This document shows positions 47,232-62,919 of a DNA stretch of 64,000 nt, in pieces. Within the stretch, counting starts at the first letter, position 1, and every line of letters begins with the position of its first letter. Below the pieces are notes generated by a model, which was given only the letters and a program-made list of their open reading frames with translations, was not told the DNA's origin and ran no database searches. The stretch lies in contig QPMI01000526.1 of assembly GCA_004431415.1 (NCBI GenBank), positions 1-64,000 of the forward strand, in the 5' to 3' direction. Position numbers and translations under genes: made by a program. This DNA is from Cyanophora paradoxa CCMP329. Lineage: Eukaryota; Plantae; Glaucophyta.

Positions 47232-50200
47232 ATGCTGGAGCCACCGCAGCTGAGCCCGCTCCAGGTCTGCGCTCCAGCTAAGCATTTTGAATCCGGCCGC
47301 CGCGCTCATTCGGGCCGCAGGCGGCGGGCCGGGCGCGCTCGACTTACCGCGTTATGAAGCTCGGAACGCTCTGGAAGCGGAGAAAAGTTCTCAAGTGAGC
47401 TCGCAGCATCGGTCGAGCGCGCGCCGGTCTGACCGGTAGCCCGCAGGCACAAGCTCGTGCGGAGGCACTACACGCTCAAGGACCTCGTGCTAGTGTACCG
47501 AATGGACGATTTCGTGCGCTCGCTGCGCTGCGCTGCGTCCCCGCGCCGCCGGCGCCGATGCTGACGGGCCCGCCGGCCCGCCGCAGGGGCCCGTCAAGGG
47601 GCAGTACGCGCTCCAGGCCGTCGATCCCGAGGACGTGGACGACCGCGTACCCCAGTTTTACGGCTTCCGGGTACACCACCAGTGCGGGGAGCTCGTTCTG
47701 TACGCCCAGAGCGCCGAGGAGCGGCGGCGCTGGGCGGATGCCGTGCGTGACGCGGTCCGCCCGGCCCCGCCGCCCCCGCCCCCGCCCCCGCCCCCGGTGC
47801 TACCGGAGTCCCCGCCGAAGCGGAAGAAGCCCCCTCCGCCCCCGGGGCCCCCGCCCCCCCGCACCCCGCCCTCTGTCGAGCCCCCGTCACCCCCTCCCCC
47901 TCCCCCGCCGCCCTCTCCGCCCAAGGTCGAGCGGCCCCCGAGCCCCCTGCCCCCGTCCCCGCCCCCTCCCGAGCCCGAGCCCGAGCCCGAGCCCGAGCCC
48001 GAGCCCGAGCCCGAGCCCGAGCCCGAGCCCGAGCCCGAGCCCGAGCCCGAGCCGGAGCCGGAGCCGGAGCCGGAGCCGGAGCCGGAGCCGGAGCCCGTGC
48101 CCCCATCTCCACCACCGGAGCCTGCGCCGCCCCCGCCGCCCCCCGCGGACCCAGTCATCGAGATCTTCTGGTACCCCCCGGCTCCCCGCTCTCGCTTCTC
48201 GAGCCCGGCCGCTGACCGGCTGGCGCGCCCGCGCCCCGCAGGGATCTGGACACGGTACCCCCCTCGTGGAACACGTCGGCGGCGCGCTTCTGGCACCGGA
48301 TGCAGGCGCTCGCCCGGCGCTGGCGCGAGGGACGCGTCTCGGAGGCGGCCAACGACGGCAGCGGCGACGAGAGCGGGTCCGAGGATGGGTACGGGGAGGA
48401 GGAGGACGGGGAAGAGGCGGGCGGGGTACTGGTCACGGCGTTCGGGGACACTTCGCGCGCCGTGCGGCAGTTCGTCGACGACCTCGCGGAGGTGCGCGCA
48501 CCCCCTCCCCGCGGGCTCCCCGTCTGAGGGTGCGGGGGGGGGGTACGGCAGCTCGACATCCACGTCGTCACGCTGCCGCGGGATGCTCGGGACCGGCCCG
48601 CCAACAAGGCGCGCTTTCCTCTACCGCCCCCCCTTCCCCCACACCTGATCCGCTATTTTTAGATTTCGAAGCGGCTGCTAGCTAAGGGACGTACCCCCGT
48701 GGGCCCGGGCTCGGTCGTCGTCTTCGTCGGCTGCGACCCGCGCTTCGCCCCCGCCCTGGAGGCCCTCCGCGGGGCGGGGTACGAGGTTCTTCTGTACGCG
48801 CCGGACGCGGAGCGGGCCGGCGCCGCCGCGTCATCGCTGTCCCCCTACCCCCCGCTGCCGGGTACGCTGCGCTCCGCAGACGCCCTCCTCCTCCGCTGCC
48901 GGGTACGCGGCGCCGCGTACGCTTTTTTCCCCGCGCCGGCCCCCCGCTGACCCCCCCCCCTCCCCTGCAGCGCCACACGGTGGTAAGGCAGGTGGCCGTG
49001 TTCGGCGTACCCCCCGAGGCCCTCCTCGCGGATGCCGAGGCTGCCGTCCGGGCCGCGCTGGAGGGCGCCGGCTCGGCTCCCGAGGGCGCCCTTTCCCCGG
49101 CCTCCTCCGCCGCCTCCTCCTCCACGGGCACATCGTACCCCCACGCCCCGGTCCCGGCCCCCCTGGGCCCCGTGACTCTGGACCCCTCCCGGCTCTTCCA
49201 CGTCGCGTCTATACTCTCCGAAGAGGCGGCGGCGCTCGCGCTTCGAAGGGGCGCGCACCGTTTGGAGCCGGCCGCCGCCGCCCGCGCGGGGCTACCCCCC
49301 GGGGCCCTTCTCGAATTCGTACCCCCCGAGGAGGCCGCGACCCGGTCCCGCACGGTCCACCTGCGCGGCGAGGCGCTGTCGGCGTACCCCCCCGAGGCCC
49401 TCTGGGCCGCCTGCGAGGCTGCCTTCGGCCCCGTCCTGCGCCCCGCCTCCCGCCTCTGGCCCCGCCTCGAGCTCGCCCGCGTCGTGTTCGCCACGTACCC
49501 CCCCGCCGCCCGCGCCGCCGCCGCGGGGTCCCTCTCCCTTCCGGACTCCTCCCCCCCCGCCCCCCTCCGGGTTGGCTCCTGGTCCGACGGCCGCTGCGCC
49601 GTATTCCTGGAGGGCTTCCCCCCCTCGTCCGACAAGGTACCCCCATCCGCTCTTCGAATTTGATTTTGAATTCGATCTTTCGCCGCAGGAGACGGCCAAG
49701 ACCGCGCTTGCGCTCTTCCGCCGCCTGTTCGGGTGCCCTGCGGCGAAAGCGACCGTACCCTCCGACGGCCACGCCGCCGTTTCCGTACCCGATCCCGAGG
49801 TCCGCCCCCATCTATATTTGGATAACGCGCTACCCCCCTGAGCCTATTTTTAGGCGGCGGACCGGGCCTGCGAGGCGGGGGCGATGGCCCCCGAGGGCCT
49901 ACCCTCTCCCCTCCGCATCTACCCCCGCGTCTACCGCTGCGTTGTGGACGAGGTACCCCCCCAGCGCCTTTGAGAACGTACCCCCCTGATTCTTTCTCCC
50001 TCACCCTTCCAGGTCCCGGCGGGCCTTTCCCCTCCGATCATCCTCGACGCCCTTCGATCCCAGCACGGCCTGGAGCCCCTCTGGAGCAAGCCGGTACCCC
50101 CCGCCCCCCTCGCTGTACCCCTCGCCTCCGATCCCGAGCTATTTCTAGGTGCGGGACGAGGCGGCGGTCCAGTTGAGGCTGGCGGGACCCCGCGCCGCCT

Positions 50201-62200: not shown

Positions 62201-62919
62201 TCCGATTGGTATCGCATACATGGGTTCCATCACGTAGCCGTTGCCGACAAATCGCGAGCTCTCCCGTCCCTTCTGACCCTTCTCTCCCAGGTCCGGCTGC
62301 CGGGAGATTGACGAGCCGTCGCACGCGCTGCGCTACCGCCACGTGCCCCTGCCGCCCTGCCCCGCCGGCCGCGCCTGCGACCGCACCCGCGACTGGCGCC
62401 ACCGAGAGGTCCGCCCTTAGAAGAAGTTACTTAAGATAGATAGATTAGACGCCGCGAATTTTAAGGAGATGTAGCTTAGAATTTAGGTCTAAGGAGACTG
62501 GCGCCACCGAGAGGTCCGCTCAGTCCTTAGAATTCGTGTTATTCGTCTTTGGGATCCTTCAAGCATCGAATTTCGTCCGGATGCATAAGATCTAGAGCGC
62601 TTCCCCAGAGTTCCGCTCTGACCCCCCTTGCCCTTGCCCGCGCCCGCGCCCGCCCCGCCCCCAGGCCTTCGCGCATCGCGGCCGCCCAGACGAATTCTAA
62701 GAAGCAGTAGCTTAAGATAGATTAGACGCCGCGAATTCTAAGGAGAAGTAGCTCAGAGTTAGAGGTCCGTTCTGACCCCTGTGCCCTCGCCCGCCCCTCC
62801 CGCAGGCCTTCGCGCACCGGGGCCGCCCCGACGTGCTCATCCCGTGCCGCGAGGGCGCCGCCTGCAGCCTCCGCGACGACGAGCGCCACTGCAACGTCTA
62901 CAAGCACCCGGACGACTGA
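47232..62919 (+). CDS. Giant multidomain ADP-ribose/RNA protein: PH - (EP)n - NYN-like - RRM-like repeats - DUF2263/TIGR02452 PARG - 10 PBZ-like fingers - putative ART - beta-rich domain - 5 PBZ-like fingers
   Basis: About 70 exons splice by hand into one open frame from ATG 47232 to TGA 62917-62919. PH: KLGTLWKR..LYAQSAEERRRWADAV. NYN-like: IEIFWDLDT..VVFVGCDPRFAPALEALRGAGYEVLL. PARG: VLNMAS..PGGGWRRGAGAQEENLFRRS..YSPSVTVFR..LLLSALGCGAYGNPP..VVFAI. Fingers: mostly C-x5-C-xn-H-x5-H. Confidence 0.85.
47971..48096 (+). repeat. Coding hexanucleotide microsatellite (GAGCCC/GAGCCG)x21 encoding (EP)21
   Basis: Directly visible; in frame within the Pro-rich linker between the PH and NYN-like domains. 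Confidence 0.95.

Follow-up and report, generated by a model that had tools for sequence, protein, structure and literature searches.

A candidate single-chain ADP-ribosylation writer, reader and eraser in the glaucophyte Cyanophora paradoxa, with a core shared with bdelloid rotifers

Known ADP-ribosylation systems and the Cyanophora gene

The tally of cellular ADP-ribosyltransferases (ARTs) in eukaryotes consists mainly of PARPs, ARTCs and Tpt1, with a few predicted families besides, and in PARP14 (and PARP9) an RRM, reader, hydrolase and transferase logic is combined in one chain. DarT/DarG systems pair a writer with a macrodomain eraser, once on a single chain (Thermosipho africanus DarTG, PDB 7OMU), and the effectors SopF, which contains DUF3626 (PMC6682159), OspC3 and CopC belong to the same fold group as DarT. 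A bacterial-type PARG with PBZ repeats was also drawn for the bdelloid rotifer Adineta vaga by Perina et al. in 2014 (PMC4245714). Here we analyse a stretch of 64,000 nucleotides (nt) from the glaucophyte alga Cyanophora paradoxa CCMP329 (assembly GCA_004431415.1, contig QPMI01000526.1, positions 1 to 64,000, forward strand; hereafter the window), in which a gene of 70 exons encodes a predicted protein that joins a bacterial-type PARG, two PBZ-type finger arrays and a lectin-like domain to a central domain with the ART fold, as judged from its rotifer homologues (Table 1). Whereas writer-eraser fusions are already known (DarTG, PARP14), this transferase family and this combination of domains appear to be new. 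We tentatively lean, with less than even confidence, towards a self-limiting ADP-ribosylation machine on one chain, which would be recruited by poly(ADP-ribose) (PAR), reversibly ADP-ribosylate RNA and carry its own antidote.

The Adineta vaga protein (of the family including B3G4H5/ACD54723) very probably belongs to the same family as the Cyanophora gene, because the PARG, the finger arrays and the central and beta domains are collinear. In its accessible parts, the 2014 survey names PARG and PBZ only, leaving the transferase and the lectin-like domain unmentioned (PMC4245714), and a literature search that took in few subscription papers returned no description of either domain for the PARG+PBZ family. 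The sequence-only reading, which had not recognised the architecture as characterised, thus holds for the transferase and not for the PARG+PBZ part. The Cyanophora gene differs from the rotifer genes seen, which have no intron or about one, in its 69 introns and its PH and NYN-like parts. With DarT/DarG it shares the transferase fold (Z 10-11), the His and Glu in register and the pairing of writer and eraser; however, its eraser is a PARG-class macrodomain and not DarG, its family has a helical insert of about 100 amino acids (aa) and no evident R51 equivalent, and PBZ, RRM-like and lectin-like domains are found in the Cyanophora family only. The SopF/DUF3626 and OspC3/CopC effectors fall in the same fold group (Z 9-10.9) and CopC shares the His-Phe-Glu and Glu-x-His residues, whereas the Cyanophora gene is intron-rich and eukaryotic, has its own eraser and readers, and has no ankyrin domain; the riboxanase aspartates were not identified in its family, which shows 11-12% identity to these effectors. 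PARP14 has no catalytic family in common with it, having instead an H-Y-L PARP domain, MacroD-type macrodomains, KH and WWE. The best viral fold matches, betabaculovirus ORF32 and IIV6 422L, are probably baculovirus/iridovirus ORF28 DarT-related ARTs (PMC9503650), a type of small stand-alone proteins with no sequence-level match to the family.

Table 1. Features of the Cyanophora gene and of its partial duplicate (positions in the window)
Feature	Position	Strand	Basis
Whole gene	47232..62919	+	70 exons, 2,440-aa open frame; RNA joints in 52920-58919
PH domain (aa 22-115), exons 2-4	47351..47757	+	Pfam PH E 3.5e-4, exon 4
Proline-rich and Glu-Pro repeat linker (aa 116-245)	47758..48147	+	sequence
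NYN-like domain (aa 246-435), degenerate	48148..48902	+	Pfam NYN E 0.2, exon 7
RRM-like repeats (aa 436-872)	48971..50744	+	last two homologous to rotifer N-terminal repeats
Bacterial-type PARG (TIGR02452 / PF10021), aa about 880-1300	50818..53236	+	
Ten PBZ-type C-C-H-H fingers (aa 1355-1617)	53464..56389	+	sequence; RNA-spliced
ART-fold domain (aa 1655-1980)	56950..59853	+	family HMM; fold of rotifer homologue
ART-domain residues H1673, F1818, Y1829, H1935, E1939, H1941	57142 (H1673), 58791 (F1818), 59494 (E1939)		
Concanavalin-A/galectin-like beta-sandwich (aa about 2060-2228)	60567..61734	+	family HMM E 3.4e-12
Five C-terminal PBZ-type fingers (aa 2308-2438)	61972..62910	+	sequence
Incomplete, broken copy of exons 45-50, covering part of the transferase domain	20830..22560	+	outside the gene

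Gene model, transcripts and the rotifer family

Splice sites were read by hand and encoded as window coordinates, giving a single frame of 7,323 spliced nt with its sole stop codon at 62917-62919 and 69 introns, 55 of them GT..AG and 14 GC..AG, so that the uninterrupted frame of about 70 exons proposed from sequence is borne out. Nine public runs contain the stretch and seven of them share about one fifth of its words, the pattern expected of spliced RNA; the run type 'RNA' is the tool's guess, and the DNA-like run X8 served as contrast. The predicted exon joints in 52920-58919 are present in contigs of runs X1, X3 and X4, which come from two studies, and absent from X8. Between 53305 and 58675, one contig of 4,605 nt (X3 record 4) reproduces the 1,542 spliced nt of the model exactly, and it continues for 1,820 nt upstream and 1,243 nt downstream, corresponding by the model to about aa 695-2230. 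The end of the PARG, the first array of fingers and the central domain share a spliced transcript in both studies. Because the length of this contig (an assembly, not a single molecule) matches aa ~695-2230, a single transcript very probably carries everything from the later RRM-like repeats to the beta domain inclusive, in agreement with the single gene first supposed. Beyond the reach of the RNA, the exons of the PH, NYN-like and first RRM-like parts (exons 1-8) are joined to the rest by the open frame, and the last fingers by frame and homology. A division into several separate genes is rejected in view of the RNA contigs that join the core and of the lack of a start codon in exons 8-9.

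Domain libraries were searched with single exons or with stop-free stretches of unspliced sequence, and the Pfam, NCBIfam and PADLOC exon scans gave nothing for the fingers, the central domain or the beta domain because the exons are too short. Homologue searches based on a gene-model fragment matched by exon 46, or on the unspliced stretch of exons 57-58, also found nothing, as did the first Atlas search. A short degenerate pattern from exon 52 led to five true metagenome loci, L001 and L008 being chance pattern matches and not members. The locus L006 contains an intronless open reading frame of 1,863 aa. It aligns with our model along about 1,400 residues at 30% identity (E 1e-180), each finger facing its counterpart; the collinear core comprises RRM-like repeats, bacterial-type PARG, PBZ array, central domain, beta domain and a second PBZ array. 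The L006 central domain retrieved 170 proteins, and all counts below rest on the best 120 of them. All named proteins among these 120 are bdelloid rotifers (Adineta, Rotaria, Didymodactylos). The order RRM-like, PARG, central, beta is complete in 89; the PARG region precedes the transferase in 107 and the beta domain comes next after it in 117, whereas 15 are without the first part, 14 without the PARG as well, and three without the beta domain. Judged by this conservation of sequence, the core is an old family and not a local invention; the convergent assembly peculiar to this organism that the sequence-only reading had proposed is not supported, since bdelloid rotifers share the core down to the individual fingers. 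In the central-domain tree, Cyanophora stands on a long branch apart from 50 rotifer-type rows, and because there is no outgroup the tree is silent on direction. No bacterial, archaeal or viral members were found at the sequence level, nor did plasmid and phage tblastn or pattern scans of viral contigs reveal any.

Some rotifer proteins carry additional parts. The members L004 (826-5946, minus strand), P0032, P0059, P0065 and P0066 end in a second, unrelated transferase of the arginine-specific type (PF01129), which replaces or follows the last fingers and puts two ART folds in one chain. P0080 of Adineta ricciae has an annotated Arf-family GTPase domain, ARF1 being the cofactor of SopF; its cluster mates are shorter and it may be a fused gene model. 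The first row of an Atlas search by shape is a second rotifer family, of 627 aa, with PBZ in 31% of its members and a similar fold (TM 0.50), which suggests further hidden transferase-PBZ families.

Existing annotation fragments the locus. A search of representatives with exon 46 gave only two matches, the EukProt Cyanophora paradoxa model fragments g16992, a partly mis-spliced piece of the 70-exon gene, and g16983, which annotates the upstream duplicate. This copy has 82-99% DNA identity to exons 45-50, with exon 45 copied twice and an 8-nt insertion that shifts the frame in its exon 48, and looks from its sequence like a recent pseudogene fragment; it is excluded as the source of the RNA signal since it contains neither exons 31-44 nor exons 51-53. 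Within exon 62, an in-frame stretch at 60505-60573 opens with the gene's commonest donor, has a branch-like motif and lacks an AG acceptor; an assembly error or the exonisation of an intron may account for it, and its removal barely alters the family score. A possible 81-nt GC..AG intron lies at 61854-61934, in the Pro/Ser linker of exon 68, with the frame open both ways. Short duplicates of exon and splice-site pieces, located within introns and 3' of the stop codon, provide decoy acceptors at 56594-56672, 60141-60165, 62490-62515, 62665-62690 and 62999-63075. On the minus strand, a divergent spliced gene at about 43500-46960 starts some 270 nt upstream of 47232.

The central domain and its companions on the chain

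All structural results refer to models of the rotifer homologue. The AlphaFold model of its central domain (predicted local distance difference test, pLDDT, 92.9; predicted template modelling score, pTM, 0.87) was compared with 48,161 solved chains, and the top nine matches were all ART folds: Mycobacterium tuberculosis DarT (Z 10.9, root-mean-square deviation 3.3, 168 aligned), Thermus DarT (10.7), SopF (10.6), fused DarTG (10.0), DarT1 (10.0), Tpt1 (9.7), OspC3 (9.1, twice) and CopC (9.0). The tenth row (Z 7.1) is unrelated and aligned to the helical insert only. In Foldseek, SopF was the best match (E 4e-3) and DarT the next, both weak, and PARP4 reached E 1.2 with probability 0.02. By shape, the Atlas returned clusters of DUF3626 and of DarT; a search by features returned OspC as well as DUF3626, with scores that serve as leads only. 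No Pfam family was found for the central domain in the 50 members scanned, with DarT, OspC and PARP models included. Three named families were accordingly considered and rejected: the PARPs (H-Y-E, PF00644), with no Pfam match and the PARP4 value just given; DarT (PF14487), with no Pfam match in the 50 members and no PADLOC match for the exons; and the OspC/CopC ADP-riboxanases, with no Pfam OspC match and a lectin-like sandwich where the ankyrin domain is expected.

The Cyanophora central domain itself matches the hidden Markov model (HMM) of the rotifer-type family with E 1.6e-93 and keeps 61 of its 81 conserved positions, including the six residues of Table 1. All 50 sequences compared carry H27, F172, E287 and H289 (rotifer model numbering), and Cyanophora retains them; H1673, F1818 and E1939 answer to the strand-1 His, the strand-2 aromatic residue and the catalytic Glu of the ART superfamily. 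The ART-like region proposed from sequence is thus confirmed, by the fold of the rotifer homologue and the catalytic residues kept in Cyanophora, and so the domain would function in the manner of the DarT/SopF/OspC group while standing outside all named families. The least probable of the readings we consider, a catalytically dead fold that binds NAD+ or ADP-ribose in a protein serving as reader and eraser scaffold, would fit the identity of just 7-16% to active ART enzymes; it is opposed by a catalytic His and Glu that never vary among 50 diverse rotifer-type sequences and persist in a glaucophyte separated from them by a long branch. Because the catalytic positions are invariant, both the transferase and the PARG are probably active. 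ART folds include NADases, and the domain might then be an NAD+ hydrolase or the maker of an ADP-ribose-derived signal, in a death or alarm effector switched by PAR. CopC does hydrolyse NAD+ once activated (PMC9239266) and the rotifer family is expanded, as immune effectors often are; but an NADase needs no fused PARG, and the invariant His four residues before the Glu, together with the conserved helical insert, suggests a specific acceptor site, making this reading very improbable.

Superposition on 7OMW (model 18-333 on chain 4-206) appears, from the alignment end-points, to pair H27 and E287 of the model with H13 and E160 of DarT (PMC9967889). Together, the His-Phe-Glu triad and the Glu-x-His (E1939-x-H1941) match the pattern of CopC (H137, F183, E325, H327; PMC9239266). 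In the family sequences, the loop before strand 2 seems to have no conserved Arg that would match DarT R51. The CopC pattern, the apparent lack of this arginine, the rank of SopF in Foldseek and its near-tie with DarT (Z 10.6-10.9) all favour a transferase that modifies a protein side chain, in the manner of SopF on glutamine or of OspC/CopC on arginine, with the lectin-like domain selecting the substrate or cofactor and the PARG and fingers handling PAR made by PARPs (for example under DNA-damage or desiccation stress) instead of the transferase's own mark. In line with this, PBZ domains occur mostly in DNA-damage proteins (PMC4245714). The fusion to PARG in most members, however, suits a cognate writer-eraser pair, the RRM-like repeats belong to the conserved core, and the acidic residues of riboxanation (CopC D172, D230) were not located in the family. 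We consider side-chain modification, the main rival of the reading that we prefer, unlikely though worth serious attention.

As to the eraser, the PARG motif GGG-X7-QEE is intact (aa 1122-1134; 51950-52049), with an intron inside that lies outside the RNA-compared stretch and whose position aligns with the homologues, and a low-complexity insert precedes it at about aa 957-1080. Exon 30 scores E 8e-4 against TIGR02452 and E 5e-4 against T. curvata PARG, the rotifer-family PARG HMM matches the Cyanophora model with E 9e-68, the rotifer homologue is above the cut-offs for the PARG family, and GGG-X6-8-QEE is retained in 93 of the 120 relatives. The DUF2263-type PARG first proposed therefore stands, and it puts a bacterial-type PARG (bactPARG) into Archaeplastida, the enzyme being recorded as absent from Plantae by the 2014 survey (PMC4245714).

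The fingers follow the PBZ spacing C-x2-G-x2-C-x6/7-H-x3-[FY]-x-H in both arrays, as expected from the ten and five C-C-H-H fingers originally read; the ninth carries a Gly/Asp insert. Single-exon Pfam scans gave no PBZ match, and the rotifer homologues exceed the PF10283 cut-off. A basic residue after the second Cys is common, and aromatic residues are retained in some fingers only. With 15 fingers flanking the transferase on both sides, the central domain might extend or branch ADP-ribose chains on the PBZ arrays (at the 2'-OH) and the PARG trim them, in a PAR turnover independent of PARPs. PARP1-type entries are not among the structural matches, and no member of the DarT/SopF/OspC group is known to polymerise, so we regard chain extension as improbable. 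The classic substrate of PARG is, for its part, a ribose-ribose link, the same as in an RNA 2'-OH adduct (PMC11833690), which would also fit such chains.

The rotifer beta domain was modelled with pLDDT 92.7 as a jelly-roll, with Z 11-12 to lectin, galectin and CBM66 domains and a Foldseek E of 3e-5, and like the central domain it has no Pfam family; according to this model the beta-rich domain noted at the outset is a lectin-like jelly-roll of the concanavalin-A/galectin type.

At the other end of the protein, the Pfam PH match covers half the domain. The NYN match (PF01936) is weak and involves exon 7 only, and this part had no match in NCBIfam or PDB sequences. By motif reading, without alignment, it keeps two of about four aspartates in what we take to be the consensus, with Asn and Arg at the others, and this loss of expected acidic residues makes nuclease activity improbable. 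Of the RRM-like repeats, the last two match the rotifer repeats in hhalign (E 1.5e-4; reversed control E 0.66), which alone linked them, a HMMER profile of the whole rotifer N-terminus giving no match to the Cyanophora model; the rotifer repeat region matches RRM_1 weakly (E 0.011). PH and NYN are annotated in none of the 120 relatives, and on this comparison the two parts are Cyanophora additions. In the domain order given by the sequence-only reading, the PH, PARG, fingers, ART-like and beta domains stand, the NYN-like part is weak and the RRM-like identity indirect. The analogy drawn with ZAP/KHNYN is weak as well, since the NYN-like part scores poorly, lacks expected acidic residues and is absent from the listed relatives.

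Possible reaction and biological role

In the self-limiting machine that we tentatively prefer, the finger arrays would dock the protein on PAR formed under stress or infection, and the central domain would add ADP-ribose in an NAD+-dependent reaction, through an oxygen linkage, to a nucleic-acid-type acceptor. The likeliest acceptor would be RNA held by the RRM-like repeats (2'-OH or end phosphate), and the fused PARG would remove the mark as a built-in antidote and timer, following the logic of DarT/DarG or PARP14. In Cyanophora, the PH and the probably inactive NYN-like domain would be targeting modules added in front. Should writer and eraser be cognate, their mark would have to be cleavable by a bacterial-type PARG. 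DarT thymidine adducts are not reversed by human PARG (PMC9967889), and a cognate writer should therefore make an oxygen linkage. On RNA, bacterial PARGs strip ADP-ribose from the 2'-OH and from 5'-phosphate ends, and they shield cells from a toxin that modifies RNA (PMC11833690). Since they cut such marks and the RRM-like repeats belong to the conserved core, RNA seems to us the best reading of the target, one that we hold with some doubt. A role in stress or conflict is made plausible by the expansion of the family in rotifers.

Several points weigh against RNA modification by such a machine. The fold was modelled on the rotifer homologue and not on the Cyanophora chain; no more than about 2 Z units separate DarT, SopF and OspC, and SopF and OspC modify proteins; and the Glu-x-His corresponds to E325/H327 of CopC (PMC9239266). 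Support for the RRM identity and for RNA binding is weak. Many fingers are devoid of the tyrosines through which APLF binds ADP-ribose (PMC6264785). The 14 relatives without the PARG region, some of which may be partial models, imply that writer and eraser are separable, and nothing in our analysis links the gene to infection or antiviral defence.

It is possible, though we would not yet call it probable, that this gene represents an undescribed eukaryotic family of the DarT/SopF/OspC group that makes an O-linked RNA mark or PARP-independent chains, erased by the fused PARG in a one-protein toxin-antidote or signalling switch. Such a switch would be common to a glaucophyte alga and to bdelloid rotifers, where it would be greatly expanded. 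Our results point to a further eukaryotic ART family, akin in fold to the DNA-modifying toxins of bacteria and to injected effectors, which has escaped the domain databases. With its likely eraser and readers on the same chain, the specificity of writer and eraser is directly testable with isolated domains, and the transferase is a concrete enzyme candidate for a gene family whose 170 members in databases come mostly from bdelloid rotifers.

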